A stretch of DNA of 50,040 nt, from assembly GCA_009103225.1 (NCBI GenBank), contig RHPI01003369.1:1935779-1985818 (forward strand), read 5' to 3'. The notes beneath the pieces are model-generated. The model did not search any database. It was not told the origin of the DNA and worked only from the letters and a program-made list of their open reading frames with translations. The position numbers and the translations under genes were made by a program. Of this stretch, positions 8,655 to 38,399 are shown in pieces; positions within the stretch are counted from its first letter, which is position 1, and the number at the start of each line of letters is the position of its first letter. This DNA is from Chlorokybus atmophyticus (Eukaryota > Plantae > Mesostigma and Chlorokybus algae).

Positions 8655-8708
<54 letters not shown>
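8655..8708. repeat. (CA)n microsatellite
   Basis: Direct reading. Confidence 0.95.
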
Positions 8709-8710
<2 letters not shown>

Positions 8711-9707
8711 CACATGCGCGCATGTGCATGTGCATGTGCACAGACACACTCCATGTGCCACGCCAAGTGTGTCACACGGCTTGTGCTATGATGCTCATTA
8801 GCACACGCAATACGCATATGCCTCAAAGCCATACACAAAATGCAATGCTACCATATGATGTTTGGTTGTGATTGATTGCTCAAGGGGGTTACTCTAGAGA
8901 GCGAACAGTGCAACGTCCATGCAACCATTAGAGTTGTGTAACCGTTGCAACCACCAAACAGCTCTCATGCAGCTACACATCTTGTCAGCAGCTTGTAACA
9001 ATGCTTGTTGAGTGGTTCAACACTATGCAGCTCAGCGTAGTACTGATGCATGCATCATGCTCGTAATGTTGAGCATGGAATGAGAAACAGTTTTCTTCGA
9101 CACTGCGTCGCATTATTCTCGACAACAGCGCTTGGTTCTGACACCTATCCACATACAGTATCCTTATCACGAGGATTCCTAAGCGCACTTTGCTTGGACC
9201 ATTAAACCTTTTCACAAATCGACATACTCTAACAATAGACGACAAAAGAAGCTCACACGAGGCGCTGCTAATGAATGCAGTGCAGTATCAACTCCCGCAG
9301 CAGGCGCTGCGTTACTATGCAGTTGACGTTGTCACTTTCGTCCGACTCAAGCTCAAACATGTAGTAATGTACACGTCGCAATCAACGGCGCCCACCAACC
9401 AAGATTGCGCGAATAACCCAACTCCACCAATCTGTGATAATGCACACGTATTTCTTCACATGTGCGTGCGTGCGTGTGCGAGTGTGTCTGGGTTCGTTTG
9501 CCTGCCTGAGCGCGTGCGTGCGTCAAGTTGACTTCTTGACGTGCTTGCAAACCAGAAGATCAGCGTCCCATGTGCATCCAGGCATGCACTATCTATGGAC
9601 CACGTGCACGAAGCTCATTCCTTTCAGCTATGTGCACATCCAGCTTTGCACACACATACACGTGCATGCGTTGATACACACGAAACAAGGACATAGCCAC
9701 CCACCTG

Positions 9708-10182: not shown

Positions 10183-11431
10183 GGTGTGTGGCACTTGTGC
10201 TGGTGACAACCCTGTTTGCTGGTGGGGTTGTTGTTACTTGTTAACAAGCGACCATGGGGGGAAGGGGAGAGGGGCGCAGTCGGTGCCTGTTGAGGAATCC
10301 TTCTTGCATGCGATAGCAGTTGCACACAAACGGGACACTGCACTCGATACCACCATGTAAGCACGCTCCAGTGTGCACGCGCATATGAGGGGGAGGGGAG
10401 GGGGGGGGGGGNTGTATTGGTGCTGGTGCTGACGAAACAGTGCGTGCATGCAAACACGGACTGCATGCGCAGACGGACACGCGCCTCACCTCTCCTTAGG
10501 CACAGGCACCAGCAGCAGACCACGCACGCCGCCTGATCGAATCGCCAATGGTTTGTTGGTTGATTGGGCCCTCACCCGTGTTGCTCACCACACTGCCACA
10601 GCACACAAAGACACGACCGACTCCCTGATGCTTCCGCCGCCGCCGCCTGGTGTGAGGGGGTGCGCGTGTGCGCGTGTGGAGTCTGCGCCTTTTGCTTTGC
10701 GCAAGCGTCGGCGGCGTCACGCGCTACGAGCGCGTCGCGCAAACAGGTGTCACGGGGCACGGTTGTGCGCACGCACAACGCAGGTGTGCTCGCGACGTGA
10801 ACCACGTGACGCCGTGCAACGTTCGTTCCGTTGATGAGCAACTTGGTGCGCACATAACCAACGAGACTCGCGATTAGTAACCTGATGTGCGAGTCACATC
10901 AGTCTCAAACTACTTGCTGTGCCCGTGTGCACGTGGAACTTGGGACGTGCGCCACACTTAGGCGCCATACACATGGCCTTGATTCTGTCCTCTATGTGTA
11001 AATGGATGCATACAAAGTGTGTACATTATATGGAACGCGAGTTGCGTGGAGAGTGCGCACCTCCTCACCGCTTGCAGGTGCTAGCTCCAAGGCGCACATA
11101 AAGCACACATCATGGGTGTTGTGGTTGGTTGGGTGCGCCACTGTACTACTACAGCCTACCACACAAGAGTGCGGTGCTGCTACTCATGCATTGTGTAATG
11201 TGGGGTCTCATCATCGCATTAAGAGCTATGGTATGAGGAGGGAGTCTATTTTTGCTCTCGCGCTACCTTGTGCAGCCTGTTGTTGTCAAGTTAATGTCAG
11301 TTGTCATGGACTGATAGCGGTATCTTATTGAAGCAGTCAGTCAAGTGAAACTGAGTGCAATGCCATTGTTATTGCATATTGACTGATAACAGTACCTTGT
11401 AGCAATTAGGCCAGTGAAATTGAGTGCAATG

Positions 11432-11668
11432 TGTCGGGTCGGGGGAAGTCGAGCGTTACATTGTCTCGGGCCGCTGCAGGGAAAGTCATGCGTGCTGGTC
11501 CTGGTGCTGCAACATGTTACAACATGTGGCAAAAGTAAAAGGTAACCCAGCTTGTATGGCGAGGATTGCTTGGTGGAGCCGCTCCACTATTGCTGAACAC
11601 GGACATGTGGAGGCGGTGTCTTCCTTAGTATACATGCTGTGCTGTAGGACACACAGTCAACAAGCCAC
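11432..11668 (-). repeat. E1 terminal repeat B2 (237 bp)
   Basis: Matches 12262-12498 with 11 mismatches by hand count (about 95%). Confidence 0.95.
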
Positions 11669-12259
11669 TACTATAGGTAGTGCTGTTTACACAGTTCTTT
11701 GCGTGAGCGGAAGATGTGTTAAACTGTTAAGTGAGATGAATGAGCAAGCAACACGTGGATACTATGCCCTGACTGATGCCAACAAGCACACTACAACAAG
11801 GCACACCAGGCCCACAGTGATGACAAGCACGATGCACACGCGAGCATGCACAGGCTCTCACACAGTGAGGGGGTTCTTGGTAACCGGGATGGCGTGTTCG
11901 TAGTTCAAGTCGTTTCACAAGCTCTTAGCTTTCTCACTCACAGTGTCATCAGCTGTTCCGGTGAACACTGTGACTACTTATACAAGTCAAATCATGATTG
12001 TTCAGAACAAAAGCTAACGGTCATATCGAGGCTATTTCCACAGCGATTGTCACTCGATATATAACACAACTTATAGCTGAACTCACAACTGAACAACTAC
12101 GCGCGGTGCCTATGTGGGCTGTGGTCGTGAGCTACCCTGAAGTCATAACCTAGCTAATGGTCAGGGACGCGCGCGCATTGGTATGTCGATAGGCCGGGCG
12201 ACGGTTTTGATGCAGACATGCCCGATGAAGGCTGGTATGTGTGGGCACCGGGCATGACA
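11669..12259 (-). repeat. E1 terminal repeat A2 (about 590 bp)
   Basis: Matches 22186-22772 with about 35 substitutions and 3 indels by hand count (about 93-94%). Confidence 0.95.
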
Positions 12260-12261
12260 GC

Positions 12262-12498
12262 TGTCGGGTCGGGGGAAGTCGAGGGTCACACTGTCTCGGG
12301 CCGCTGCAGGGAAAGTCATGCGTGCTAGTCCTGGTGCTGCAACATGTTATAACATGTGGCAAAAGTAAAAGGTAACCCAGCTTGTACGGCGAGGAGTGCT
12401 TGGTGGAGCCGCTCCACTGTTGCTGAACACGGACATGTGGAGGCGGTGTCTTCCTTACCATACATGCTGTGCTGTAGAACACACAGTCAACAAGCCAC
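12262..12498 (-). repeat. E1 terminal repeat B1 (237 bp), directly after a G7 purine tract
   Basis: Second copy of 11432-11668. On the minus strand it starts TGGCTTG right after ...AGAAGCTCAGGGGGGG and ends ...CCCGACA. Confidence 0.95.
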
Positions 12499-12542
12499 CC
12501 CCCCTGAGCTTCTGGGGAGGTTCCGGCTCCAGAGCTCAGTTG

Positions 12543-12704
12543 CTAACGCAGGTGAGCAGGGCCGTTGGCGCGGCAATCATCGCATCATTACTTCATGGGT
12601 ATTGCGTCCAATGGGGGCTCCAGACTGTAGCAGTGCAGGCCCTTGGTACAGCCATCGCAGAGCATCATGAGTGCGTCATCGCCGGCGCTGCCGCAGCGTT
12701 CACA
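12543..12704 (-). pseudogene. PHD finger at the C-terminus of the E1 integrase
   Basis: CERCGSAGDDALMMLCDGCTKGLHCYSLEPPLDAIPMK**CDDC fits the C4HC3 PHD spacing, with one Cys changed to Ser and two stops where W-x is expected. Confidence 0.85.
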
Positions 12705-13900
12705 GCGTGTGCTGCGGGCGGGGCGAGGGTGCTGGATGCGCGCGAAGCCTGCTACATAGGGGAGGTGACATGGCGCGCAATTCACCATGTTGTCTTTCAA
12801 CCTCTCGCCATTCTGACCAAGAAGGTCCAGCACTCCTGTGGGGTACACCTTGAGTACCTTGTAGACGGTGCGGCCCACGGAGGTGTCGAGCGTGTCCTTG
12901 GTGGCTGCCATGCGGTAGGCACAGTCACCTGCTTAAAACCGCCGTTGGCGCTCCTTGTGGAAGCCGCTTCGCACGCGCTCGTAGCGCAGGGTGTCACGGT
13001 GCTGTGCAATGCGCAGGTTGTGAAAGGCCATTGGGACGGTGTGCTCGAACAGCGTGGCACGTGTGGTGATGTCGTGGTGCATCGAGTCGGGATCGTCGAG
13101 GTTGTCCACCACACGGTCCACTTTCTGCTGTGCATGAAAGGGGAGCAACGGCAGACGCCCGAACAGCAAGTAGTATGGGCTGTACTCGCGCAGCGCCGCC
13201 TGCTTTGACGATCGGTAGCCAAGAGCCACCCACAGAAGGTGGTCGTCCCAGGTGTTCTTCTCATAATCCAGCACGTACTTGCGGAGTGCCTTCTTGATAG
13301 TCTGCACCGTCCGCTCGGCTAGACCGTCGGCTTGAGGGTGGTCGCACGAAGTACGGCGATGATCGATGTAGCATCTGTCCAGCAGGGTGTCGAACTCCCC
13401 TCTGAACCCAGTGCCCTTGTCGGTGATGACCTCAGCGCAGCTGCCGAACCGGCTAAGGACATGGGAGAGGAAAGCTTGAGCCACCCCCCTGCTGCTCTTG
13501 TCGCGTAATGGCACCAGCTCCACCCATTTGGAGAAGTGCTCGATCATGATCAGGATTTAGCGGTTGCCCCGCGCCGAGGGTGCCAAGTCTCCCAAGATGT
13601 CGAGTCCCCAGCGGTAGAACAGCCCAGAGATGGGGAGAGGGTGCAAGGTGGCGCTGCGTGTGTAGAGGCTGGCACGTACCATGTCACACTGCTGGCAGCG
13701 ACTTACGAACCCTTAAACCTGTTTGGACAGCCCACCAATATTGCGCCCTTACTAAGCTGACGGTACGCTTGACGCTGAAGTGCCCAAGCTCCGTGTGGAG
13801 GGCAGCGATAATGCCCTCTCGCGTGGCTGGTGTTGGCACCTCCTTGTCCTCGTCTAGGACGCGGCGGTACACTTTGTCACTCGCCCACCGGTAGTGGTGG
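12705..13900 (-). pseudogene. E1 DDE integrase (rve core with HHCC remnant), frameshifted
   Basis: HTELGHFSVKRT...YWW; RWGLDILG (D1), VITDKG (D2), HPQADGLAERTVQTIK (E); WDDHL..VALGYR...YSPYYLLFGR. Confidence 0.92.
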
Positions 13901-14269
13901 GTGCGCTGACTGACACGATCTTTCTCTCGTGCACTCATATTGGAGGGAAGCTGGCCACTTTGAAGGAAGGAGAGTGATGGCTTGTCCATACCTATGTTCT
14001 GCCTGGTGTCGATGGGTGCCAGCTCGGTGTCGTTAACTTCGATGTCGACCGCGTGGACGTCTCCTAGTGGTGTGGTCACTGCGGGGTCGGTAGCCTCAAG
14101 GGCCGGAACCTCCTTTGTCGTTGAGGTGGTGTTGATCTGGCGCCCTGACCGTAACGCGGCAGCAGCAAACATGGCTGCCATTATGGCTGCCATGATGGTG
14201 GGAGCTGCTGCTGCGGGGCTGAGCTCGTGCCGAGCTCCGGTTTCATCGCTGGTACTACGGTGAGGGTTG

Positions 14270-16040
14270 CGACTGAGACCATCAGCGCCGTGAATGGTGA
14301 GGCTGGCGAGGTGGTCGATCTCGAAGTCATACTCTTGCAGCAACAGGGCCCAGCGAGCAAGTTTCTCTGTCAGATGTTTGTTGGTCATGAACCACTTGGG
14401 TGGCTGATGATCGGTAATCAGCTGGAATTGTCGACCAAAAAGGAAAGGTCTGAAGAAGGAAATAGCCCATACTGCGGCGAGGCACTCCCCCTCGTAGCTG
14501 CTGTAGTTGGCCTCAGCGCATGTTGTTGCTCCGGCTGGCGTATGACACAATCCGCTCCTTCTTGTTCTCATCGTACTGTACCAGCACAGCCCCCATCCCA
14601 AGTTTGCTTCAGTCGGTGTGGAGGATGAAGGGCTTGTTGTAGTCAGGCCGTGACAGGATGGGAGCGGTGGTGAGCCTGCTCTTTAGCTCCTCAAACGTCT
14701 GCTGTTGTGGCCCCTTCCACGCAAACACCACCTCCTTCGTTAGGAGCTCGTTGAGGGGTCACGCGATCTTTGCGAAGTCTTTCACGAACAGACGATAGTA
14801 CTTGGCAAGGCCCAGAAAGGTGTTGAAGGACTAGCATGCACATGTAGCTGAGGCAAGCATAGACACACAGAGACAGAGCTACCGCCACCAGAGCATACAC
14901 AAGTCACATCACATTCATCTATTACAAATTGTCTGCTGGTTCTTATATCAGCCAGTTACACACACGTCTACGTTTGCAAGCACTGCGTAAGCTATACTCA
15001 GCCTTTTAACGCGCTCTAAGCTGTGTTGTCTTTATACAATCAGAGCTGTCCAACAAGCTCTTACACGCCTAATATGAGTAAGTATACGCGGAGATATGAA
15101 GCAGTAAGTAAGGCTCCAGTCTGGAGTCTGGAGTCTGGTCCGACGACGCCACCTTGCTAAGTCCGGACCTAGTGCTCGTCCTTACGACCTTCTACTCCTG
15201 TGTGGAGGGTCGATGCTGATCGTATGTAAGAATACTCTCAACAAAAGGCACGCAGACGCGTAAGGTCTGTGGGAGCAAGGGATAGCCGCCAAAGCCTCCA
15301 CCTTTGCCTGTTGTACGTACACACCGTGAGACACAATCATGTGCCCTAGGTAGGGTACCTTGCAAGTGAAGAAGGTGCACTTGTCGGGGTGCACTGTCAT
15401 CCCCACCCCCTTGAGTCTCTCCAGCACTTCCTCGATGTGCTGCAGGAACTCGTCGTTACTGCGATTAAAAATGAGAATGTCGTCGATGTAGCATCGCGCG
15501 AAGCCAGCCCCTTCAAGGCTTTGTCCATGACGCGCTGGAACTTGGCAGGAGCGTTCTTCAGTCCGAAGGGCACGACCTTCCACTGGTACAGCTGCCGTTT
15601 GCCCCAGAAAGAGGTCTTGTGCTTGTCCTCCTCCTTGATGGCGATCTCGTTGTACCCTTGTCGCATATCTAGGATGCTAAAGACGGTGCAGTATCCTACA
15701 TCATAAAAGATACCCTCTGCAGTAGGCATTGGAAACTTGTTTTGTTTAGTCTTGTTGTTGAGGGGGCGATAGTCGCCGCACATGCGCCGGTCTGTCTAAT
15801 TGCCTGCTGAATCCTTTTTTAGGGGCATGACGGTCGCAGCCGCAAAGTCCGACGTGGACTCCTCAATCAGGCCTGCATTCAGCAGAGCCTTGCACCTCTG
15901 CTCGACCAAGTCTTCTTCCAACTTAAAGAGTTGGTACTGTCGCCGAGACACCGACTCGGTGTCCACCAACTCGATGGCCATCTGATAAACTGAGCAAACA
16001 CCCAGTTCCCTTACGCTAAAACTGAACTGGCTTCTCCACT
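14270..16040 (-). pseudogene. E1 reverse transcriptase and RNase H, interrupted by a solo LTR
   Basis: RRMCGDYRPLN, FSILDMRQGYNEI, VPFGLKNAPAKFQRVM, YIDDILIF, PYLGH, FLGLAKYYR, PFILHTD, NYSSYEGECLAAVWAI, ITDHQP, ARWALLLQEYDF. Confidence 0.95.
14821..15243. mobile_element. Solo LTR (423 bp) nested in the E1 RT
   Basis: Starts TGTTGA and ends TCAACA, with the 5-bp duplication AAAGG at 14816-14820 and 15244-15248. Removing it restores ...RLRAFLGLAKYY. Confidence 0.92.
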
Positions 16041-16269
16041 TGTCGAAGAGAGCCTCCAGTTCTCGCGTCGGGCCTGTAGCCAGTGGTCCAATGGCATGGG
16101 ATCAAGAGGTAGCGTTGGCGACCACTGGGATGTCCTCCACAGTGACTGCTGCCTGCTCCTCCATATGGGCAATTTCGAGGGCGGTGTGTGCCGCTTTGGT
16201 CTCTTGCACGCGATCGGCCCACCCCCCTGCCAGGTGTTCAAGCTCCTGGAAGGACACATGGCGGTCTTG

Positions 16270-17240
16270 GAGAGCAAAGCACATTTTTAATAACCATACC
16301 ATGTTGTTCTGATCCATGGCGCGTCCCAATAATTGGCATTTGCTGATTGTCGGTCAGCGTGGAACATGTGATACTGCCTGGAGAGAAGCCCATGGCGCGT
16401 TCGCGCTCACGTGCGTTGGGTTCCTCCAGCTGGCCTGTGTTTGAACCCAACACCATGCCTGCGCCGCGGTCGCGGAAGGCGTACGATCCTAGGTAGGACA
16501 CCAGCGTGGGGAGCGCACGACGTGATTGCCCAGGCTGGTTGCACTGGTAGAAGTGGTGGTGATCGCGACGGGTGACTGGTTGTGCTGATCAGAGTTTAAG
16601 ATAGCGTCGACTGTCAGATAGCGTGGACGACTGCTGTGCAAATATTCAGCAGCAAAGAGATCTTCGACTGTTGCCAGGTTGGTCCACTTGGCGCGGACGC
16701 GATGATCACGGGAGCTATGTCGCGCTACGTTGATTCTGAGAGGATGCCCCAATAAGGAACACACCTATCGGAAGCTGTTGGCCTCGTGATGGCGCTTATC
16801 GTCCTCAGAGTGCACATTTTCGATGATGTATTCTGGAGGCCTGGACAGCTGGTTGCTCTGCAAAATTTTAATGCCACGCATCAGTTCCCAGAACAGTTGT
16901 GAGCGAGGATCAGTGAGCCCTTGCCCGCTGCCTGCTCTGAAGTGTCCTTGACACTCCTATCCTGCTATCAGCAGGTCGATGTTGCCCACCGTTGGGAGGT
17001 GATCCGCAATGATTAAACGGATGTTCTGTGGCAGTGCCTTCAGACTGCCTTGCAGTGCCGATAGCGAAAGTCGCTGCGGGTAGCATTTGTGTAGGTGGCG
17101 CAGGTGGTGTTTCAGGGCAATCTGTGCGTGTGGATCAGGGTCACAGTAGAATTACTTAATGACCGTCGCGCCGGTATTGAGGACAGTGGCGAGGCCACTA
17201 CCTATTCCTCTGAATAGTTCATTCGCGGTGATGCCTTGTT
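16270..17240 (-). pseudogene. E1 C5 cytosine DNA methyltransferase (DNMT3-like catalytic domain), disrupted
   Basis: Motif I ELFRGIGSG, motif IV IAG*ECQGHFRAG, motif VI YIIENV, motif VIII SRDHRVRAKWTNL, motif IX RERAMGF, motif X LLGRAMD. Confidence 0.9.
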
Positions 17241-17649
17241 GTTGCCGGAATAAGTGAGACTCCACTACTCCAGTGGCCATCTGGTGTTGTTCCTGGACAG
17301 CAGCTTGGTCCTTGTAGAGAGAGAACCGTGAAGTGAGCCGCGGTCTGGTCGGTAGCAGATGTGCGACCACCTGTGCGCGCCAGCGGCGTTCCGCTGGTTG
17401 CTGGTGGGCCACTTCCTCAGTGGCATCTTCCTAAGACTCGTCGTATGGGATAGGAAAGTCTTGGTCCGAGTTGTGGGTGACCACCGCAAATGATCTGTCA
17501 GTGGTTGTCGAGCCTGACTTGTGGGTCGCTGTCGCAGCTGACGTGTCAGTGTTGCCGACAACGATCTGTAGGTGGCTGTTGCAGCTGACCTTGGGTGGGA
17601 ACGAGTGCGGGCCACCAACTCGAAAGGCAGATATCCTTGAACCTCTCCG

Positions 17650-18030
17650 TCCTCCTCATCCCAATGAGGACGAAACCAGGCCTTTTCTGTTTAGCAGTCC
17701 AGCCCCATGCCAACGGGGAAGTTGAAGTCCTGTCCCAACAACAGGTCGAAGGATCCTGCGTCGGTGACCACACACTTCTGTATGATCTCGGTGCTGTGGG
17801 ACGGGTCCACTCCTATTAAGCGAATGCAGAGGGCTTGCTTGGTGATACCGATCACCTTGTCACGGCTGCGCTGTCAAGCACGTATGGGCATGGCATCAGC
17901 TCAGCGCTGGTGATGCCAAGGTCACGTGCGAGGTAACATCCGATAATGACAGGCTGGGCTCCAGAGTTCAGCATCACTTGCTTGGCTGCTTGCTCATTGA
18001 TTGTGACATGCTTGCCTTGGTTGGCGATCA
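17650..18030 (-). pseudogene. E1 retroviral-type aspartic protease
   Basis: VMLNSGAQPVIIG (decayed DSG/DTG) and FDLLLGQDF. Aligns with E2 VLLDTGAHPVILG...FDVLIGKEA. Confidence 0.8.
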
Positions 18031-18049
18031 TGGCCGCGTTGGCATGGAT

Positions 18050-20234
18050 GCGCAGTCGCTTGAATCGTCGGTAGCGTGTGCGTGGGGTGTCTGCTGCTGC
18101 AGTCTCCTCCGGTGGTATCAAGCGCAGTGCGGCAAGCGCCCCTTTGCCCAGCTGAGTCTTGCGCACTTCCTTGACCGCGGCCTGGCCCGAACCGTCCTTG
18201 CCTTGGCTGTTCATGAACACGCTGTGGCTTGGGTGCCGGCAGTGCTGCCTGCGGCTGTCCTGGTGGTGGCGCCGGGGGATTGCGTCTCTGTGTGGCCGGG
18301 GTCATTCCTGGCGGCGTGGCCAGTGACTGTTGGGGAAACCCTGAAAGACCGGGTGTTTGTGGGCCCGCCTCCCGTGCAACCTGATTTTCCACATAAGTCC
18401 AGCATACTGCATGAGCTGCCTCCCTGACCAGTATACCTTCCCATGTGGCTGTTGTGTTGTTAATCACGTCACTCCAGCGATGATTCTGAGGCATGGGCTG
18501 GAAGTACACTGCGCGCAGAAGCCGCGCTCGTATGGCGTGGGTGATGGTGGGGACCCTTATGATCCCTGCCATGTAGGCATCCCATCTGCCATTGACCACT
18601 CCCACCTTCAACACCGTTGTTGCTCGCGCCCGCACAGTGAGGTAAATCTCTGGCTGTTGGACATGCTGCTCGTAGGCAGCTGAGATGTGTCTGCGTTGCC
18701 GCGCTGCTTCCACCCCTGGTCACCTCTATGGCCTCTTGTACTCCTTCTAAGGTGTCGGTGGATGTCGAGGCAACCTCGTCACGGGCTTGCCGTAGTGACT
18801 GCAGGAAGGCGTCCACCCAGAGCAATCTGGTGCTGAAGGCGAGCAGGGGGACTGCGGGGTGGTTGGTGACTAGCCTAGTTACCAGTCTTGCTCGAGCTGC
18901 GTTACCACCGTCTAGCATCCCCAGCATCCGCCTCAGGCCGATGCCTTCTTGTCGGTGCAGCATGGTTGCTTGTTGCAACATGGCAGTACGTAGTTGCTGT
19001 TCCCCGATTGAACCCGCTCCATCTCGTTGTGTCCACCCTTGCGGTGTGAGGTAGCCTCTCCTTGGATCCCGTTGATCTCCAGGCAAGTCTTCCAACAAGG
19101 CGGGTAGCAGCGGGGCGATCACCCCCCTGATTTGTTAGACTAGCGCCCTCGTATGGTCACCGTTGGGCTCAATGACGAGAGGTGTTGTACTGGATGATGG
19201 GCCACCGACTGTTGGCTAAAAAATGTCACTGCGAGAATCGGCAAGGGCGTGCGCTCTTGCGTCGATTGCCGCCGCTTGATCTTGTCGCCAGGTGAATGCC
19301 GGTTCCAGCGCGGTGTAGCGCTCATGACGTCGAACGGTATCGAGGGGCCTCAGTGCTTCATTGTCACCCACAGGCATGTCGGCTGTATCAGCGATGTGCT
19401 GCTGTACGTTGGGTTGCCCTTCCCTATACGTGTCCAGTGGGCTGGGCTCAAAGGGTTCATGACGGATTGGTGCGGGTTGGCGTGGCGCCATCTGCATATC
19501 GTCATGCAGAGTCTAGAACAACTACACTGCCAGCTCCAGTACAATAGGCGTTCTGACAACGAAGCCACGGTCTCGCATGGGAGGTGCCGTGGCGGCGAGG
19601 ATTTCATCCTCCAGCTGTCGCTGAGTTTGTTTTGGCAGCGTGTGAGATTCAGGCAGTGGGAAGACTCAATCACTGCGTTCAACGCGTGTTGTGCGCTCCC
19701 CTCTGCGCCCAAAAGCAATGGTAGTGGGATCTGCCCCACGCATGATGGTCTCTCAAGCACGCTTAGCTTGCTGACCTCGCGGGGCAGCCTGAGTGAGGTC
19801 GTGGGCGGGCAATGTAGCTGAGCGTGTTGCTGCAGCGGCAGCAAGCTCGACGATGGCACTGTCGATGGTGGCGAGAGTGCCGCTGAATGGCGCGAGAGTG
19901 GTCTCAAAGCCTGTTGGCACAAGTGGTTCTGCGATTGGAGCGGGATCGGTGCGACCTACTGCTGCAGGGTCGGTGATAGCGGTGGCTGTGGCCTGCTCAC
20001 CAGTGTGGGCGCAACGGTGCTCACCAGTAGACCAGTTTCTGGTGAGATTGGAGCAGTTACTGCTAGCGCTGACGAAATTGACGTCGTAGCCAATGTAACC
20101 ACTGCGGCTGGTGTAGTACCACTGGTGGCTTCAAAGGAGGTGGCTGCTGACGATGTTGCGGCTTCCCCTCGAACTCGCCGGGATGGTTGAATACGTGACG
20201 GAGTGCTGGTGTCTCTCGTGCGCTTTGGAGCCAT
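18050..20234 (-). pseudogene. E1 large uncharacterised coding region between Gag and protease (about 700 codons)
   Basis: Chain of overlapping minus-strand ORFs (19956-20234, 19350-19922, 19216-19497, 18469-19122, 17994-18713) with protein-like composition. No domain recognised. Confidence 0.55.
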
Positions 20235-20270
20235 CAGTGCCCACCGGGCAGAGTAACAGGCGCGGTAGTC

Positions 20271-21752
20271 CTACTCCTTGTCTTCCTCCAAGCGTGCCAT
20301 ACATGCCATGAGGGCAGCCATATGGTCATTACCTGGCGGTTGGGCTGGAGCCTTGGCGGCAACAGCAGCAGCGCGCGGACGTTCTTCCAGTCCCTTACGC
20401 TAAGGAGGACAATTCTTCCCCCTGTAGCCTTGCTCTTCCTTGCGAGCGTTGGCGTATTTGTTGGTGTGGTTATGGCCTCCTGTGTGATTGCTGTTGTAGC
20501 CACCAGAGTTGTTGCCGTTGTGGCCTCCAGTGTTGTTGCTGTTGTAGTTGTTGATGGGTCTCAACTCGGGGAATTTGAGCCAGCAGACTGACTTCAAGTG
20601 GCCTGTCTTGTGACAGTAGTCGCGGGCCAGAGTGAGTACTCTTCGGTGCACTTCTTTTGGTAGTGCCCATGCCGTCCACAGCGATGACACAGCTCAGGGG
20701 CAAACAAAGCAGCATACGCTGATCGTTTCCCTTTGTCGCGTGCTGGTGGAGCGTCGCGGCCACGTTCGCGGCGCGGAGGCTCGACAGTTGTGCTGGCTAC
20801 AGGCCGTGAGGCGCTGCGGTTGGTGTCCAGCACTGCCTTCTCATACACCAAGCGCTTATGAATGGCTTGTGCAGTCTCGAAAGCTTCCTCGAGCGTGTAG
20901 CCAAGGGGCCTGCTGTAGTTCAGGGTCAGGCGCGTCAACACGCTGAGGGTGGCATCCAACTCATTGACTTATACCACTGCAGCCGCCTCATCACTGACGA
21001 TCTTGTAGTCAGTGTCCTTCAACAGTCCTTCTAGTCTGGAGTACAGGCGTTAGGGGTCCTCATTGGGCTTGCGCCGGAACCGCCTCAACTCCTCCACTTT
21101 GCTAGTGGTCTGCGGTGGGAAGGTGCGACGAAGTGCAGCGTATAGAGATTTGCGTGGAGAGTCTGAGATGGCAGCACCTATAGTGATGGCTGGTGCACGC
21201 AGTGCAATTGACCCGAGGGTGAAAGCACTGCCTCCTGCACGAGAGCTAGGTGTTGCCATAGGTAGGGGCGTGCCCACCTCAACGGCTGCAGTTCGTTGTT
21301 CTTCAAGGATGGTGGCAGAACGGTCCAGGATCCGGGCCCGTCGCGCGGCCGTCTTTATCTCAATCTCTGCAAGTCAGGTTGACAATCACCAACTTCGGTT
21401 CCTCCTCCTCTGCTCTATTAATGGCTGCCGCTATAAACAACCCGGAAACTGCAGCGGGAGTGGCAGGTGGAAAGACGGCTGCTGGACGGTGCAGTGATGC
21501 AGGTGCTATGGTACTGGCAAGCTCGCCATAACCATCAACTCGATGCAATTCAGCAACAGCCTTTCAAACATCATGTGCTTCATGGTCCAGATACTGAGCT
21601 GCAATGTGAAAAGAGATCTCATCGGACCAGTCTTTGTTCTTCAGAGCCTGCTGTCGCATCTTGGAGTGGAACTTGATGATGAATTTGTACAGAGAGGTAG
21701 TGCCAGCACGTCCGGAGAAGCGCAGGGACGTGGTTGAGCTGGAAGACTCCAT
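20271..21752 (-). pseudogene. E1 Gag with two CCHC zinc knuckles
   Basis: RFSGRAG...WSDEISFHIAAQYLDHEA; CHRCGRHGHYQKKC; DYCHKTGHLKSVC; N/G-rich tail. Confidence 0.85.
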
Positions 21753-22185
21753 CTCGTAGTCGTCACTGTCAGCTGAGCGTGGGGAAGCTCGATGCCGTGG
21801 AGTGGACAGGATTGGAGTGAAGTCAGAGATAGCACGTGAGCCTCTGCTGCTACAATCGTTGCTCCCGTCGCTGGTCCGCTCGTAGGTGAGGTTGGAGGTT
21901 GGGCTCCACCTGCTGAGGTCACCCTCGTCTATTGGAGAGAACGGGATGGGCCTGCTCTTACAGCTAGTCCAAAGGTGAAAGTGTATGCATGGTAGAGTGT
22001 TTGTGCTCTTCCGCCTGTCGCGATGCCGCTACCACTCACCACACTAGTGCTTACGTGCGCACTATGTAATGACAGAGATAATGAATGCCCAGGGATGTGT
22101 CCCCAGATACAGATTGCACTATCTGATGCAGAATGCAATGCACTCACTTGAGCAAAGAGGGTGACACTGTGAGTCGATAAGCCAC

Positions 22186-22772
22186 TACTACAAGTAGTGC
22201 TGTTTACACAGTTCTTGCATGAGCGGAAAATGTGTTGCACTGTTAAGTGAGGTGAATGAGCAAGCAACACGTGGATACTATGCACTGACTGATGCCAACA
22301 AGCACACTGCAACCAGGCACACCAGGCCCACAGTGATGACAAGCACGATGCACACGCGAGCATGCACAGGCCCTCACACAGTGAGGGGGTTCTTGGTAAC
22401 CGGGGATGTCATGTTCGTAGTTCAAGTCGTTTTACAAGCTTTTAGCTTTCTCACAGTGTCATCAGCTGATCCGGTGAACATTGTGACTACTTATACAAGT
22501 CAAATCATGACTGTTCAGAACATAAGCTAACGGTCATATCGAGGCTATTTTCACAGCGATTGTCACTCGATTTAGAACACAACTTATTACTGAACTCACA
22601 ACTGAACAGCTACGCGCAGTGCCTATGTGGGCTATGGTCGTGAGCTACCCTAAAGTCATGACCTAGCTACTGGTCAAGGACGCGCGCGCGTTGGTATGTC
22701 GATAGGCCGGGCGACGGTTTTGATGTAGACATGCCAGATGAAGGCTGGTATGTGTGGGCACCAGGCATGACA
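22186..22772 (-). repeat. E1 terminal repeat A1 (587 bp)
   Basis: Second copy of 11669-12259. On the minus strand it starts TGTCATGCC. Confidence 0.95.
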
Positions 22773-23332
22773 AATGCCATTGTCGCTTCACTGGCTAAAG
22801 CTTTCTTCTATGGCTCTCACGGTAGGTGCTTAAAATGTGTATGACAATGTGGCATTGCTGGCTCACTCCGTTGCTTACTTTAATTGTTGATAACACAGTG
22901 TTGTAATGTTATAATTTAGAACTCACTTGCCATAATGTGTGCAGGTACTCACCGTGTGGCTAATTGCATGCGAACGTTGAATGCTAGCTGTATTACTACC
23001 TTCTTGCTTGCTTGTGGATGAAGGTAGCGGGCAAATTGTGCTATTGCATTTGACACACCATGCACAAATTTATAAGTTATAAGTGCAGCCGTGGCTGTGT
23101 GTGCATGCGACGCATGCCTTCTCTTTAGTGAACAATCAAGCTGTTAAGGAAAAATCCCCGTTGGTGAGCTCATCCTATTGAAGCATATTGAGTACACAAG
23201 CATGCAATCAACTAAATGAAAATTGTGCGCAGCCAACAAGTAAACAGCACCAAGGGGTTCACGCAACGGGGCGCCACAAACAACCAGAGGCTACCCACTT
23301 AATAGGGTTCATCACTCGTACTGTCACATATC

Positions 23333-28349: not shown

Positions 28350-29640
28350 GCCTTAGTTGCCATCGAAGCGGGAAGTGTGGCACATCATCCATCTCGCCTT
28401 GGATGGATAACCTTCATTTCAATATGTGTATAGGTTGAGGGAGACCAGCAAAGTTTGCGGACATGGAGAGGCGGATTATGGCCTTGCTTGAGAAGGGATA
28501 GAGCCAAGTAGCTCTCCCTTCGGAACACCTATCCTATGTGTACCTGAGAAGGCTACGCATGTGCATGGATTATAAGGCCTTCAACAAGCTGATCAGTAAA
28601 ATTAGGTATCCGCTATCAAAGATAGATGATTTACTTTATCAACTGAGCGGAGCCCCGGTGTTCAATTCCTAGGATTGGATCAGTGGGTATCATAAGATCC
28701 ATATTACACCGAAAGATGTGCAAAAAACAGCGCTTCGTACGCCGTTTGGCCACTTTCAATACAAAGCGCAACCTTTTGGGCTGACGAATGCGCCAGCCAT
28801 GCTTTAAGCTATGATGAACCGTGTGTTTCACAAGCTCATCGGGAAGATATTACTTGTATACTTGGATGACATCATGGTCTTTAGTAAACCCAAAGTCGCA
28901 TGTTGCACATGTACGTGAATTGTTGGAAACGCTGCGTGCGAACCAAGTTTTTGCTTACATGCCCAAATGTGAGTTTGGGAAAACGGAACTTGAGTTCTTG
29001 GGGCACATCGTAAGCCAGAAGGACGTGCGCCTGGATTTCAATAAAGTTGCCAAGGTTAAAGAGCGGCCGGCTCCTCGAAATGTGCATGAGGTACGTGCAT
29101 TCTTGGGGTCGAGCAATTATATCCGTAAATACATCCTTGGATACTCATCACGGGTTGCTCCACTCACAAACTTGATGCGTGACAAAATCGTGTGGCGGTG
29201 GGCACAAAGGCAGGAGGACGCTTTGAAGTGTATTAAAGAGGCGTTAGTGACGGCACCAATGTTACAGCTGCCGGACTTCATTACACCCTTTAAAGTAATC
29301 TCAGATGCATTCATGGTTGGCACTGGTGCTGTAATGCTCCAGAATGGGCACGCGCAGCAAGAAAGTCTCTCCAATCGAGAGAAATTTTATAACAACTGAG
29401 TAAAAGTCGTTGGGGGTAGTCCATGCGCTACAGGAGTGGCGCTGCTATCCAGAGGGGGTTTACAATGGTCATGGACACCAACCCCCTTGATTTCTTTCAA
29501 ACCCAACCAACCTTGTCGCGGAGGCAATCGAGGAGGGGTGAGTTCTTATCGCGTTTCAACTTGACTCAGGTGTACAGACTAGATAGGGTGAACGTGGCAG
29601 ACCCCTTGAGCCGCATACCGTTATTACTGGCAGCGACAAC
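28350..29640 (+). pseudogene. E3 RT and RNase H
   Basis: RMCMDYKAFNK, PFGLTNAPA, VYLDDIMVFS, EFLGHIV, VRAFLG, PFKVISDA, NVADPLSR. Confidence 0.92.
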
Positions 29641-31290: not shown

Positions 31291-33706
31291 TTAAGTTGGG
31301 CGAGTTTGAGAGTGAACTCACATCCACGGATGCCATTTGAGAGCATGTGCTCGGTTGCAACACATTCATGTGCAAATTTTTCTTTTTATGTGACATGCCA
31401 ACAAGCGCGCACTGGTACCTAGTGTCAGAGTTAGTTGTCACTCTAACGACTTGCGTTTTGTCTTATGTGTAGTGTGCGATAGTTCAGTAGGGCTGCCACC
31501 GTAGCTGGCCATTATCGTGCGGGACATAAGTCCCAGTCTTTGCATGGAAGTTGCAATGCACATGGGGAGCATTGTAACGCCAAAGGGCTGGCGAAAGTCA
31601 CTTTCAGTTTCTTACTTATGTGGTAAGTAAGAGGGACCAAGTGAGGATTTCGCATGCCTTGGCATGTGTGCCCCATATTTATAATGCTATTCGTATTTTA
31701 AACGGCACAACCTTTTAAGGAAAGAAAGAGCGGCGCTAAGATAAGTACATGATGGTTACATATACTCTTTGATGTAACATGTAGGCGATGATAGATACGC
31801 AAACAGACACGTGTATAGAATGATTACTTAATGACTTTACACATAGCATTATATTTGCATTGTAACACCGGCAAACGCAATCTTGTTAAAAACATGCTAG
31901 CGTTTATGTAGAGAAATGTACACGAGCTTTAAGTATGAAGGCTGCATATACATGTATATGTACCATGTTCAATAAAGCTGTCACAACTTGAACATGTGTG
32001 TCTTATAATACACACTGGTATACTTGCAAGCACAGACGCACTTTTCACTGCCGCTTTATGGCACCACGCATGATACGACAATATGGATTTATGCATAGCA
32101 ACGATGTCGCTGATGCGTCGGGGCATGTTCATTACCAACATGCTCTATCGCATTATAGTTGATCATTGATAATCAGAGATGATTACAAACGATGCGCATC
32201 ACGGATGATCACACACACATATGATGCGCACCTGTTGCGCTTGCATATTCTGTTCACTATGTTTCTTCAGGCTGCGAGCCCAAATGAAGTGTATTGCGTG
32301 TATCATGTCTTGCAATGGCAAATTTCATTAAGATATATGCACTATTTGTGTTATGCTAGATACATCACATAAAGACAATTGATCATATTATGGCTGCACA
32401 ACAGACACCGACGTTTGAATAACGCATTTTGCTTGTGAGGATATTGCAATAAATGGCATTATCGCTCTTGTAACTGGTTGTGGTTTGAGTATCATGTGCA
32501 GGGTGAAGCACCACATTATTTATTAACACCCCAAAAGGTATGTGACTTGCGTAATAGCTATATTATACTATTGTGGACTCTAATTGACAGCTGGTAGTGT
32601 GCTACATAAGTATCCATGTGCACCCTAATAGACAATGACGGCTCTCACACCATATAAATTGGTAAGGAGACATGTCATAACGGAACAGTGTTTTAATGTA
32701 TTATAAAAGTTTATGAAGCCTTCCGTTGTCATAAAAAGTTTATGAAACCATTGAGTGTATCAAAAAGTGACGAGATTAAGACCGTAAAAGCACTACATGC
32801 AATGAGACAGTCTGCTGCTTCTAAGTTGAACTTAAACGGGCGTGTTGTTGCAAATGATGTATGACACAAATATTAAGAGTGTCTTCCCATATTTCTCACC
32901 ATATTCTTTGAGCAGCATCATGCAAGCGGATATAGCTAAACCAAGTTGCTGGCACAATCATTACGACAATAACAGTTAAGTGATGAACTACTCGAGCAGC
33001 ATCACGTCTTTGGTTGGCGTGTCTTGCCGGGCATCCAATGAATATGACGTCTTAAATTCAACAGCGGTAATGCATACCTGCGTGAACGTGGCATGGGATA
33101 GCTTCACATGGATAAGAGAGCAGTTACAGCGCTTGCAAGACTACGCGGTAAAATGTAAATACCCCCGCTGTGCACGTTGTCACGCAATGCAATGAGCACG
33201 TCATCAGCAACGTTACAAACGTGTTCTTGTTTGTTGTTTTGCAAACGGCAATGTGACGTGCTGCTTATTGACCGTCAACATGCGCATGCAAACATATAAT
33301 TAGATGACTCACGCGGTGCTCACAAAAGTGCATGCTACGTGCCATTGCCGGTAAACCATTTGGAAGGTTTATGTTGAACATGTGACAAATCCTAACTAGA
33401 AAGGCAGATTTTGGGTAACATGACTGGTCATGTGCACACCAAGTTAAGGGTACCACTTTTGCTTGCACGTAAACAATATGCAACTGTTTACTTTGTCGTG
33501 CAAGCAGGCCTCGACTGAGGGGTGGGTATCGCAGTGGGTTGCGTACGCGGATGTGTACAAATGTCAAGAATGATGAATGGGCAGCTTGCAAGTGGTCAAG
33601 CCAACGACACCGAAGCTGTGTGTAGCAGCGAGTACGGGGGACAGTGGGGAGGAAAACCAATTGTGTGATACCCTGAGCTTGACCGGGGTGGTAGTTACTC
33701 AACAAG

Positions 33707-34560
33707 CTCCGGCGCTTATCCCTACGCTGCGCGGCCTGAAATTTGGCCAGGGCAGAGGGTACCGCAGCTCTGAGCAGGTTGGCGCGGGCTGTCAGCACTT
33801 CCATCATGTGGGTGGGTTTGTTAATGATGTCCTCAATTGCTGTAGCATGGCGGACGCGGAAAGGGAGCAACGGCTCCCTGCCGTACATGAGGAAGTACGG
33901 GCTGAAGGAGCGTAGTGCCGCCTGCCGGGTGCAACGGTAGCCGAGGGCAAGCCAAGGCAGGAATTCGTCCCACTCATCCTGCGGATGGGTGACACAATAG
34001 CGCCGGAGTGCCTTCTTAACTGTCTGTACCATTTGTTTTGCAAGCCCGTTAGCTTGAGGGTGATCGCGGCTAGTGCGGCGGTGATCGATTAACGAGCAAT
34101 TGAGGTAGACGTCGAATTCTCCCTGGAATTCAGTCGAATTCTACCCTGGTCGGTGAGGAGTTCGGCACAGGCGCCGAACCTGCTGAGTATGATCAAGGAA
34201 GACCTGCGTCACGGTTGCGGCCGACTTGTCGGGCAGGGGGATGAGTTTGACCCACTTGCTGAAGTGCTCAATGGCAACGAGGATGTATACGTTACCACGG
34301 CGGGTAATGGGCAGCTCGCCTGCCAAGTTCATGCTCCAACGATAACAAAGGCCCATGATGGGCAGCGGGTGAAGCTGGAGATGGCGATGCGAGAAGCTGG
34401 CACGGATACGGTCACATGACTTGCATTGCCGGAGCACGTCAGCGACATTGCGTGTGAGCCCGTCCCACCAGTAATCGCTGCGCACCATGTTGGCTGTGCG
34501 CTTCATTCCGAAGTGGCTTTGGTGGTGGTGGAGGTTGGCGATGATGGATGCTCGTCGATG
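33707..34560 (-). pseudogene. E2 integrase, C-terminus deleted
   Basis: HHHQSHFGMKRT...YWW...CKSC, RWSMNLAG, IEHFSKW, TDQGREF, HPQANGLAKQMVQT, FSPYFLMYGR. Homology stops abruptly after AQRRDKRR. Confidence 0.92.
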
Positions 34561-34899
34561 AGGCTGGGGTACCTCCTTGCGCTGACCGTCGTTCATAATG
34601 CGCCAAAGGGTGTCGTTACTCCAGGTGTAGTTATTGGCCCGATGCTGTGCACGATCGACTTCCTTGTGGTCGAGCCCACCGGGTAAGGTCCCTGTCTTCA
34701 CCAGCTGTAGAGTAGGGGCATCGGTACAAATATCTCCCTCAGATGCAGGAGGTAGGGTGGCACGGAGCACGGGGTTGCGTGCTTCTGCGCGCATACCAGC
34801 TGCCACAATTAGCACGGAGTGCTGGTGGGGAGTGTCACCGTCGTATCGGGCGCCGGTGATGTCCACAATGTCGGGGTTGGGGTTGCGACTCAAGCCGTC

Positions 34900-36200
34900 G
34901 GCATCGGTGTTGATGACGCCAGGCTTGTGCGTGATGGTGAAATCATACTCTTGTAGCAGCAAGGCCCAACGGGCGTGCTTATCAGTCAACTTCTTGCTGG
35001 CGAGGAGCCATTAAAGAGGTTGATGGTCCGTTACCAATTTGAACTGGTAACCGAAGAGGAATGGCCGGAATAACTGAATGGCCCAGACCGCTGCAAGCTG
35101 CTCCCCTCTGTAGCTGCTATAGTTGGCTTTAGCAGCGTTATTGCTCCGACTGACGTAAGCAATAACTTGTTCCTTGCCCTCGTCATTCTTCTGACATAAC
35201 ACAGCTCCTAGCCCAAGTCGACTCCAGTCGGTGTGGAGGATGAATGGCTTGCTGTAGTCGGGGCGTGCCAATACGGGGGCGGACTGAAGATGGCTCTTGA
35301 GTGCCTTAAACGCCTGCTGCTCAGCTTCGCCCCAGTGCCAAGTGATTGCCTTCTTTAGCAGGTCGTTGAGGGGCTTGGCTATCCTCGAGAAGCTCAGCAC
35401 GAACCTATAATAGTAGTTGGCCAGGCCAAGGAAAGCGCATAGCCGCGAAATGTCGGTAGCGGGTGGCACCTTCAGTAATGCGTCCACTTTTGCCCGCTGC
35501 ACCATAACATCGTTAGGGACGATGAGGTGGCCGAGGTAAGGGATCTTGTCGGCGAAGAAGGTGCATTTCTCAGGGTGGGCCATGAGATTGTGTGCCTTCA
35601 GTCGCTTTAACACCTCCTTGATGTGCTGTAGGTGGGACTCTGCAGTGTGGCTGAAGATGAGAATATCAGCAATGTAGCACTTGGAGTGGTCCAGCCCGCG
35701 TAGGGTGCGGTTCATGACGCGTTGGAAGACAGCTGGTGCGTTCTTCAGCCCGAACGGCATAACCTTCCACTGGTAGAGGGTCCAATTGCCCCAGAAGGCG
35801 GTCTTGCACTTGTGGTCATCCCGCATGCCGAATTGGTGGAAACCAGAGCGCATGTCGAGGACTGAGAAGTATCTGCAAGTTCCAACGCTGTCGAAGATTT
35901 CGTCTGGCGTGTACATGCGGTAGCGGTCAAGCACCGTGTGGGTGTCAAGGTTGCGGTAATCTCCGCACATACGGCGTTGTGTCCACTGCCCGTGCTCGTC
36001 CTTTTTCAATGGCATGACGGTGGCCGCAGCGTACCGAGTGCTAGGGGCTGCTTCCTTGATAAGGCTGGCGTCCAGCAGCTTCTTGCAGTTGGTCTCGATA
36101 AGTTCGGTTTCCACCTTGGCCAGAGAGTGCTACTTGCTGAAGATGGGGCTGGTGGTGTCCAGCTCTATGGTGAAGTCGTGGAAATTACACTTGCCCAAGT
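34900..36200 (-). pseudogene. E2 RT and RNase H (367-aa open stretch 36114-35011)
   Basis: RRMCGDYRNL, FSVLDMRSGFHQ, MPFGLKNAPAVFQRVM, YIADILIF (YIDD decayed), PYLGH, PFILHTDWSRLGLGAVL, TDHQPL, ARWALLLQEYDF. Confidence 0.95.
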
Positions 36201-36479
36201 CCTTGAGGGAGTGTGCGAACTGCGACTTGTGATCTTGCAAGAGGGTTTTCAACTGATCCGCGATGTTGCCAGAGGCCATACAGCCGATTCTCCACCCTTC
36301 CTGCTCGGGCTCATCCGTGTGAGGGATGTCCAATGCTTCCTCAAAAGCCTCAAGTTCGGTGCTGTGGATCGCCATGGAGACGAATGACGGGTCCCTGATT
36401 TCAACGGACTCTCCCCCCCCAGGTTATGCCTGGGGCTGAGTCTTGGCTAGTAGCTGTCCTGCAGGGCCAAGAAGGTCTC

Positions 36480-37420
36480 CAATAGCCAAACCATGCTGTT
36501 CTAATCAATGGCGCAACCAAGGAGGTCGCGACAATCGCGTTCCGCTAGCTTGGGTGCCTGCGTGATGGCGCCGGGACGGAAGCCCATGGCTAACTCGCAT
36601 TCGGTGGCGAGTAGTTCGCGTAGACAATGTAGATGGGCATCCCGATGTTGCCATTGCGGAAGGAGTGGGAGCCAGGAAAAGCCATAAACGTGGGCAAGGC
36701 AGCCATAGGCTGGCCCACCTGGATGCTTTGGTGAAAGCTTGTGTGGTCTGGCTTGGACACTGGTTGCGAGGTGCTGCCGACAGCCAAGATGTCGGCCACA
36801 AGGAGGCTTGAAGGGCGTACGTACAACAACTGGGCAGCAACTAGGTCTTGTGGTTTGGCGAGGTTGGTCCACTTGCTGCGTAAGCGCTGTGCACGGGAGC
36901 CGTGAGCCGATGCGTCAGCGACCACTGGCTCACCGAGGACGGTACAAACGCATTTGTAGTCTGAGCGAACATTGGCGCGATGGTCATCCCTGGAGCATAC
37001 ATTTTCCAGAATGTATGCGGGCGGCCTGGAAGGTTGCTGTTGCTGGAGGGTGCGGATGATGCGAACCAACTCCCAGAGCAGCTGAGACCGTGGGTCTTGA
37101 AGGCCTAGGCCTTTGCCAGCTCGAGAATGCCCTTGACATTCCCATCCAGCAACAATGATGTCGACACCACTTAATGCTTGCAGGTGTTCGCCTGTGACAA
37201 GGTGAATGTCTTGAGGCAATGCTCGTAGACTGCCGGCCGCTGCGCATGGGTCCATGTGCGGGTGGTGTCTGCGCAGCTGTGCCAGGTGGTGGAACACCGC
37301 TGTCTGTGCTTGAGGGCTGCGGTCACAATAAAAATACTTGCTGACTGGTAAGCCGACATTTAAAATGGCTGCCAAGCCGCTGCCGACGCCGCCGAAAACT
37401 TCTAAAACTGTTAGGCCTTG
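36480..37420 (-). pseudogene. E2 C5 cytosine DNA methyltransferase (DNMT3-like catalytic domain), motifs I-VIII in one open frame
   Basis: LTVLEVFGGVGSG (I), VDIIVAGWECQGHSRAG (IV), YILENV (VI), GSRAQRLRSKWTNL (VIII), then after a frameshift ECELAMGF (IX) and DLLGCAID (X). Confidence 0.93.
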
Positions 37421-38330: not shown

Positions 38331-38399
38331 AGGGTGATGGCTGAAGGTGACATGGTGTTGTTAATTTTTGACCATGCCAATGTTGGGCCGATACCGAAG

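Follow-up and report, generated by a model that had tools for sequence, protein, structure and literature searches.

What kind of retrotransposon carries the split repeats of one enzyme class and the integrase of another? The question is raised by a locus in the streptophyte alga Chlorokybus atmophyticus, within a stretch of 50,040 nucleotides (GenBank assembly GCA_009103225.1, contig RHPI01003369.1, positions 1,935,779 to 1,985,818 of the forward strand) that is referred to here as the window. On its minus strand, at 11432-22772, lies a unit whose direct repeats follow the order A1-internal-B1-A2-B2, the order by which the tyrosine-recombinase elements PAT, Ngaro and VIPER are defined (PMC4157794), and whose pol region nevertheless encodes an rve (DDE) integrase. 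Judged from its sequence, the unit is a degenerate Ty3/Gypsy copy whose pol includes a Dnmt-type cytosine methyltransferase, an element of the type published as KnitGypsy-Dnmt3. The reading that we favour, and consider probable rather than assured, is that in this dead copy the long terminal repeat (LTR) defined by reverse transcription, B-GC-A, is out of register with the ends used by the integrase, and that the copy arose from complementary DNA (cDNA) with joined ends that was opened at a palindrome inside the LTR.

Repeat finding and self-BLAST give, in the coding sense, the order A1, internal region, G-run, B1, GC, A2, B2 and reproduce the repeat coordinates of the first-pass annotation of this DNA. 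A1 (22186-22772) and A2 (11669-12259) are 92.9% identical over 606 aligned columns, including 14 extra bases, and B1 (12262-12498) and B2 (11432-11668) are 95.4% identical over 237, all four being on the minus strand. The two pairs had been said to have diverged to a similar degree, and the difference between them is indeed not significant (chi-square ~1.7 on alignment counts). A GC dinucleotide (12260-12261) sits between A2 and B1, and a run of seven G residues (G7) lies directly 5' of B1. In the coding sense the unit starts with TGTCATG, preceded by host flank and not by B, and ends with CCCGACA, giving TG...CA termini, and the 4-bp target-site duplication AATG (+ strand) is found on both flanks, at 11428-11431 and 22773-22776; these termini, the duplication and the G7 tract had all been noted before. 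The equal repeats expected at the two ends of a Ty3/Gypsy element are absent, since the left end has A only and the right end has B-GC-A-B, and the same holds for four of the relatives described below (L075, L023, L078 and L083). Taken together, A and B form an 828-bp TG...CA unit with TGTC/GACA inverted ends. There are no Ns or assembly gaps inside the unit, the Ns of the window being confined to 10412, 37773-37782 and 48020-48235.

The earlier reading missed one feature of the left end. The first 14 bases of B (GTGGCTTrTyGACT, designated x) occur in an extra copy directly after A1, at 22172-22185 on the minus strand. The unit thus holds x three times, and at the A2-B2 junction A and B share an overlap of 14 bp. 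The 5' part of the coding-sense sequence reads cattTGTCATG...(A1)...GTAGTA, then GTGGCTTATCGACT, then CACAGTG and the internal region. The 3' part reads GCTCAGGGGGG, followed by GTGGCTTGTTGACT...(B1)...CCCGACA, the GC dinucleotide, TGTCATG...(A2)...ATAGTA and finally GTGGCTTGTTGACT...(B2)...CCCGACA and the flanking catt.

Pieces of minus-strand reading frame match the Pfam families zf-CCHC, RVT_1, RT_RNaseH, Integrase_H2C2, rve and PHD. The first Pfam scan gave no match in the 4.8 kb between gag and the reverse transcriptase (RT), and we mapped the protease, methyltransferase, RT, RNase H and integrase of the window copy by local tblastn with an intact relative, L002. What the first-pass annotation had listed as an unknown domain is in fact a protease plus a Dnmt-type methyltransferase. 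In coding order, and all on the minus strand, the element comprises a gag CCHC zinc knuckle at 20642-20689 (PF00098, E = 0.0047, which is below the Pfam cut-off, its position agreeing with the gag CCHC of L002 and of a second element in the window); an aspartic protease region at 17107-17861 (located with the L002 protease open reading frame (ORF), itself a match to PF13650); a broken C5 cytosine DNA methyltransferase domain at 16325-17043, in which alignment leaves the ECQGH...ENV motifs legible (tblastn E = 2e-49, with PF00145 matched by the homologous ORF of the second element); an RT at 15281-16083 with a frameshift near 15496 (PF00078 and tblastn with L002); RNase H with the RT connection at 14329-14821 (PF17917, E = 6e-20, and tblastn with L002); a frameshifted integrase at 12753-14517, with an H2C2 zinc finger at 13732-13830 and the rve core at 13350-13553 (PF17921 and PF00665; tblastn with the intact L002 RNase H-integrase, E = 9e-149); and, at the integrase C-terminus, a PHD finger at 12606-12704 (PF00628, E = 4e-6).

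The order protease-RT-RNase H-integrase is that of Ty3/Gypsy elements, with the methyltransferase inserted between protease and RT, and a C5 cytosine methyltransferase inside a Gypsy pol is what characterises KnitGypsy-Dnmt3-like elements. The earlier assignment to Ty3/Gypsy, with an rve integrase and no recombinase, is therefore borne out by the Pfam domains: no Phage_integrase match is seen in the window pieces, the second element or the intact L002. The same three sequences have no Pfam match to a chromodomain, and it is the PHD finger that occupies the integrase C-terminus of the window element. Every reading frame of the unit is broken by stops or frameshifts, and the many such lesions mean that the copy is dead. 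The window RT is also split by ~440 bp of non-coding DNA (14822-15280), perhaps a small insertion or conceivably an intron; in the second element only 44 bp separate the same two RT blocks. Shortly 3' of the zinc knuckle, the gag region contains a 24-bp sequence repeated in tandem (2.5 copies, 20488-20547).

The first-pass annotation knew of no description of such an architecture, but one exists. De Mendoza et al. (2018, Nat Commun 9:1341; PMC5890265) reported KnitGypsy-Dnmt3 from Klebsormidium nitens, another streptophyte alga, as having Gypsy domains with DIRS-like repeats, in a single sentence of a legend: the repeats are 'the same as that of a DIRS retrotransposon' (A-coding-B-A-B). Going by this published description, both elements have a C5 DNA methyltransferase inserted in a Gypsy-type pol and the same repeat arrangement, and the window element has in addition a PHD finger after its integrase. 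The paper does not report target duplications, TG...CA ends, a palindromic junction, primer sites or a mechanism for KnitGypsy-Dnmt3. In our literature search the name occurred in no other paper, and the ends, duplications and mechanism were described nowhere that we found. The split-repeat Gypsy architecture is already in print, then, if barely described; what appears to be new, as far as we could find, is the shift in register between reverse-transcription LTR and integrase ends, the conserved palindrome, the duplications and the self-primer sites.

Is the layout peculiar to this locus? Comparison of the window with itself gave only the distant second element, which has no recognisable ends, an exact 20-mer of A had no match in the JGI metagenomes, and no close protein relatives were returned, the best being 40-65% identical over parts; the nearest named matches are from Closterium and liverworts. 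None of the searches brought up a K. nitens sequence, and the names of the protein clusters pointed to a pseudoscorpion, Closterium and metagenome proteins. A profile search of metagenomes with the methyltransferase domain, on the other hand, yielded 80 loci at 35-42% identity (given L numbers here), whilst viral contigs scanned with the same profile gave weak, phage-like matches only. The intact relative L002, a contig of 15922 bp from ENA ERZ25070695, encodes gag-CCHC, protease, DNA methylase, RT, RNase H and a zinc-finger plus rve integrase. Among solved structures this integrase is most similar to that of Ty3 Gag-Pol (7q5b, E = 3e-38), followed by the integrase of prototype foamy virus (PFV).

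The split layout recurs among these relatives. L075 is a complete replica, reading aagg, A1 (1679-2017), internal region, GGGGGGCGAG, B1 (10238-10350), GC, A2 (10353-10691), a single A, B2 (10693-10805) and aagg, with a run of six G residues before B1. L023 is a full element with the same repeat order and its own duplication, TCTC. L078 consists of the 3' end only, B1-AT-A2-B2 followed by flank; L069 and L066 show B1 (60)-GC-A2 (587)-B2; and L008 shows both the flank-A1 boundary and a B1-GC-A2 that runs to the end of the contig. In Closterium sp. NIES-68 (L083) and its NIES-67 counterpart (L115), protease, methylase, RT, RNase H and integrase are followed by B1 (18073-18208), GC, A2 and B2 (18676-18815). 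In a moss-metagenome family, all 12 independent 5' ends pass directly from flank into TGTCATG, none of them with B-GC upstream. TG...CA ends and 4-bp duplications, in keeping with the 4-5 bp of Ty3/Gypsy elements, are found in five of five complete elements; the duplications recorded are AATG (window), AAGG (L075), TCTC (L023), CACA (L062) and TACA (L068). The first-pass annotation had proposed that the layout belongs to a lineage, and had suggested scoring relatives for repeat order and duplication length and checking for misassembly. The full elements L075 and L023 and the 3' ends of L078 and Closterium L083 answer as it expected, and the recurrence of layout, palindrome and duplications in unrelated loci leads us to reject misassembly and a one-off event at this locus. 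The split layout is a feature of the methyltransferase-carrying Gypsy lineage.

Some of the relatives depart from the common pattern or were set aside. The Closterium copy, at a locus common to NIES-67 and NIES-68, is without gag and A1, and is bracketed on both sides by one satellite-like tandem repeat (12026-12519 and 18816-19286 in L083, and likewise in L115). L116, from Closterium sp. Yama58-4, is uninformative on the layout, its 3' end being interrupted by seemingly copia-like sequence, and L084 is truncated after the integrase. L002 consists of two head-to-tail units of 7.94 kb, 98.6% alike and with intact ORFs, and L037, L038 and L041 all contain one 16.2-kb unit, circularly permuted and with a B of only 13 bp. 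These four and L024, all permuted or doubled contigs, are uninformative on chromosomal ends; L002 and L037/L038/L041 could equally well be extrachromosomal circles, tandem arrays or collapsed assemblies. L060 and L051 have a different domain order (RT-RNase H-methylase-integrase) with the same palindrome downstream, their methyltransferase having been either relocated or acquired twice. A miniature at L062 13199-13480 (also L064 5538-5819) is made up of the last 153 bp of A, nine primer-site bases, a remnant of the pre-B tract, and B; in L062 it lies 3'-terminally in an element that has been rearranged but is still flanked by the 4-bp duplication CACA.

The junction of B1 and A2 was followed by sequence search. 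The end of B1, the GC and the start of A2 together form GACA-GC-TGTC (GACAGCTGTC, 12256-12265), a perfect 10-bp palindrome with a single occurrence in the window, in which the two integrase ends lie head to tail. The exact 10-mer is present downstream of pol in 13 of the metagenome loci found with the profile, in the ENA contig and in Closterium L083/L115 (for metagenomes and ENA together: L002, L008, L012, L024, L032, L038, L041, L045, L047, L051, L060, L066, L069 and L075). Each of these elements has a single copy, placed 2.4-6.6 kb (mostly 4-5 kb) 3' of the methyltransferase, across lineages that are only 35-50% identical in protein. One sub-family has GACAATTGTC in its place, and L035 has CGTCAGCTGACG. 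In the GACAATTGTC form, seen at L023 10495-10496 and L078 7719-7720, the spacer is AT instead of GC and the site stays a perfect palindrome, which would reflect either a symmetric constraint on the site or deamination of both strands of a CHG site.

Where, then, are the ends of the LTR as reverse transcription would define them? By the usual rules, U3 begins after the polypurine tract and U5 stops at the primer binding site. In the window a polypurine-like tract ending in the G7 run (AGAAGCTCAGGGGGGG in the coding sense, 12499-12514, minus strand, the last G at 12498 being base 1 of B1) is the putative plus-strand primer, and B1 is immediately preceded by a purine tract with a terminal G-run in every family in which B1 can be delimited; the G-run has the same position relative to B1 in L002, L008, L012, L024, L032, L045, L060, L069 and L075. 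In five families the bases directly after A1 (in the window, after A1 plus x) are complementary to a site inside A. The window has CTCACAGTGTCA at 22162-22173, a perfect 12-nt complement of TGACACTGTGAG at 22450-22461 within A1 (both minus strand), a match reached in 4 of 5000 shuffles; TGACACTGTGAG, which is present in A2 too, would mark both the self-primer and the 5' end of the transcript, and TATAAG lies ~34 nt upstream at 22490-22495. The complementarity extends to 16 nt in L075 and L049 (0 of 5000 shuffles, with no clear TATA-like box), 16 nt in L002 (TATAAA 28 nt upstream), 15 nt in L038 (TATTTAA 31 nt upstream) and 10 nt in L024 (no TATA-like box seen), so that a TATA-like box is found ~30 nt upstream of the predicted transcript start in three families. 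A primer site of the transfer RNA (tRNA) type was considered and rejected, as the sequence after A1 misfits a tRNA 3' end. A self-primer fits instead, a signature known from Tf1/Sushi and plant Tcn1 elements (PMC6317226).

A purine tract before B1 and a putative primer site behind A1 set the reverse-transcription LTR as B-GC-A, one complete copy of which (U3-R-U5) is made by A2 together with B1 and GC. The target duplications, in turn, place the integration ends at the start of A and the end of B. The integrase ends thus lie midway in the reverse-transcription LTR, which makes the integrated copy a circular permutation of the cDNA. The boundary between A2 and B2 coincides with the end of U5 and the start of U3 as set by the primer site and the G-run, from which it follows that the integrated long form corresponds exactly to end-joined cDNA opened at the palindrome of the 5' LTR. 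The join itself consists of one shared x in the window, one extra A in L075 and L078, and a 21-nt filler in L023. The first-pass annotation had already described the layout as a two-LTR circle, with LTR = B-gc-A, opened inside one LTR. Both predicted primers, the tract for the plus strand and the site for the minus strand, lie where its definition of the LTR would put them; its circle, like the origin of all four repeats in a single event, is an assumption.

The favoured reading of joined cDNA opened at the palindrome can be put as a cycle. Reverse transcription would set the LTR as B-GC-A, with U3 running from just after the purine tract and U5 reaching to a Tf1-like self-primer site, and transcription would begin inside A, ~30 nt past the TATA box. 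An RNA predicted to run from inside A1 to inside A2 would make an ordinary R-U5...U3-R genome. The end of U5 would then be joined to the start of U3, creating the A2-B2 junction, in the window by way of the 14-bp terminal redundancy x; we infer an intermediate with joined ends, either a circle or a concatemer. The integrase would recognise TGTC... at the start of A and ...GACA at the end of B, back to back in mid-LTR, open the joined molecule at the palindrome of the 5' LTR and insert it with a 4-bp duplication. Once integrated, the copy would draw its promoter, R and U5 from A1, and U3 and R for the next RNA from B1-GC-A2, a complete 3' LTR; B2 would be a leftover that only carries the right-hand integrase end. 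Cleavage of this sort has precedent in retroviral integrases, which cut the palindromic LTR-LTR junction of 2-LTR circles (PMC1180852, PMC1905944, PMC4372172). We also worked through models in which B2 derives from the standard strong-stop transfers; given the positions of the primer sites, none yields a B after A2.

A number of points weigh against this cycle. No unintegrated DNA was seen, the doubled or permuted contigs having other possible origins, and the window copy itself is dead. The transcript start, poly(A) site and use of the primer are sequence predictions. A two-LTR circle has two identical palindromes, so that the other permutation (A-B-GC-A-internal-B) and solo A-B units are to be expected; the other permutation is found at none of 13 5' ends, a count of modest statistical weight, and solo A-B units lay outside the sample. 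The single permutation hints at a polar step. L075 and L078, which are independent insertions, have an identical one-base junction, which suggests that the ends are joined in a templated or very regular step and not at random. Finally, short forms exist. Several moss-family copies end G-run-B-flank and are without A2-B2 (L022, L025, L026/L029, L028 and L048), and the A-internal-B form that the first-pass annotation had predicted is represented by L068 6012-14651, a complete short element with the duplication TACA and long uninterrupted integrase and methylase matches. These short forms may be direct products (of cutting at both palindromes, or of a 1-LTR circle), products of a linear route or later B1 x B2 deletions; without a 3' R, they could not be replicated under the standard scheme.

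It is from the short forms that the most serious rival draws its strength. In this account, which we regard as unlikely though not negligible, there is no circle: linear cDNA, B-GC-A...B-GC-A, is processed by integrase at its internal palindromes, with the short A-internal-B form as the primary product. The long form would arise, within the same unlikely account, through a template switch that precedes processing and takes the plus strand from the right end onto the left-end B, in the window via the 14-bp x. Short forms are at least as frequent as long forms in the moss-metagenome family, and L068 has a duplication of its own; x is a terminal redundancy of the predicted cDNA and could guide the switch; the identical L075/L078 junction fits a regular, templated step; and a one-sided extension would account for the single permutation seen. 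Against this, a main product lacking the 3' R repeat, and hence not reverse-transcribable by the standard scheme, would be oddly sterile, an x-like overlap is absent in the moss family, and the short forms could equally be B1 x B2 deletions. We know of no precedent in this enzyme family for processing hundreds of bases from a DNA end.

The remaining rivals fare much worse. That the window holds an ordinary two-LTR Gypsy altered once, through rearrangement, insertion into a tandem LTR pair or misassembly, might be argued from the single available copy of this exact family and from the 14-bp x on either side of the internal part, which could pass as a duplication made by insertion into an A-x-B unit. 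The same order, palindrome and 4-bp duplications in unrelated loci and in Closterium, the absence of Ns from the unit and the agreement with the published description (PMC5890265) make it very improbable. We give equally little credence to a tyrosine-recombinase element of DIRS/PAT/Ngaro type, or to a Gypsy element for which such a recombinase acts in trans: the repeat order is the defining one (PMC4157794), and DIRS elements with a DNMT exist in Symbiodinium, yet Pfam gave no Phage_integrase match in the window element, the second element or L002, a zinc-finger plus rve integrase is present, and all five complete elements bear the TG...CA ends and 4-bp duplications typical of DDE integrases. 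Least probable of all is a conventional element with A-B as its real LTR, in which B would regularly be lost from the 5' LTR once the element has inserted, and an additional B would be produced by duplication close to the 3' LTR. However neat A-B may be as a TG...CA unit with inverted ends, the primer complementarity begins right after A1 (plus x) and not after any B, the G-run precedes B1 and not A2, and none of the 12 independent 5' ends has a B; every copy would need to have undergone the same two precise deletions.

With PAT/TOC1/kangaroo, Ngaro and VIPER the window element shares the split direct repeats, the internal pair lying 3' of the enzymes (PMC4157794), but those elements have a tyrosine recombinase and no DDE integrase, in contrast to the zinc-finger plus rve integrase, TG...CA ends and 4-bp duplication found here. 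In features, Tf1/Sushi and plant Tcn1 resemble it in the order protease-RT-RNase H-integrase and in TG...CA ends with a short duplication; their primer site is complementary to the start of their own RNA rather than to a tRNA (PMC6317226), as the putative self-primer site of the window element may be. They differ in having two ordinary LTRs and a chromodomain and no methyltransferase, where the window element has a permuted LTR and a PHD finger. Gypsy-7a_cRei of Chlamydomonas (Craig et al. 2022, PMC9940879) is, going by a figure legend, another large green-algal Gypsy with a PHD finger next to its integrase, described there with ordinary LTRs and with no methyltransferase listed; it is active in laboratory strains. 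A parallel to the palindrome is offered by the 2-LTR circles of PFV and human immunodeficiency virus type 1 (HIV-1), in which the integrase ends meet head to tail (CA-NN-TG) and can be cut by integrase to integration-competent ends (PMC1180852, PMC1905944, PMC4372172). The retroviral palindrome exists only in the circle and serves a side route, whereas here it is permanent in every LTR and integrated copy; cutting it would consequently be obligatory.

The second element of the window mentioned above is a methyltransferase-Gypsy remnant on the minus strand (33685-42200), with 50-60% protein identity to the main element and longer ORFs (methylase at 36590-37723, PF00145; RT-RNase H at 35011-36114; gag CCHC at ~41.8 kb). 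It shows no terminal repeats and no palindrome, and its 3' side fades out after a run of five G residues at 33162-33166. A third fragment, of RT/RNase H on the + strand (28556-29396), belongs to a different Gypsy-like element and has ~30% identity to each of the two others. Long microsatellites of the types (CT)n, (GT)n and (CACG)n occupy 1-70, 1700-1763, 8655-8728, 44170-44270 and 47960-48350, an assembly gap of 216 Ns (48020-48235) falling within a (CT)n run. No host genes were recognised anywhere in the window, and the flanking ORFs are without Pfam matches.

The combination of a split layout with a DDE integrase, TG...CA ends and target duplications means that layout alone cannot classify an element, and LTR finders that seek two equal terminal repeats will miss or mis-annotate this lineage. 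More tentatively, and with some doubt on our part, we suggest that a Ty3/Gypsy lineage represented in Closterium, in moss-associated and other metagenomes and, by report, in Klebsormidium has moved both integrase ends to the middle of the LTR as a fixed palindrome, and has come to depend on an obligatory route through joined cDNA cut at an internal site. If true, a DDE-integrase retroelement would have circle cutting as an obligatory step of its integration, and the split-repeat layout, so far tied to tyrosine-recombinase elements, would have had an independent origin. It also poses a testable question, namely whether a retroelement integrase can work obligatorily from an internal palindrome, as retroviral integrases do only in a side reaction on 2-LTR circles. 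As a lineage with its own cytosine methyltransferase, widespread in environmental sequence data, these elements are useful for the study of epigenetic conflict between transposons and their hosts.

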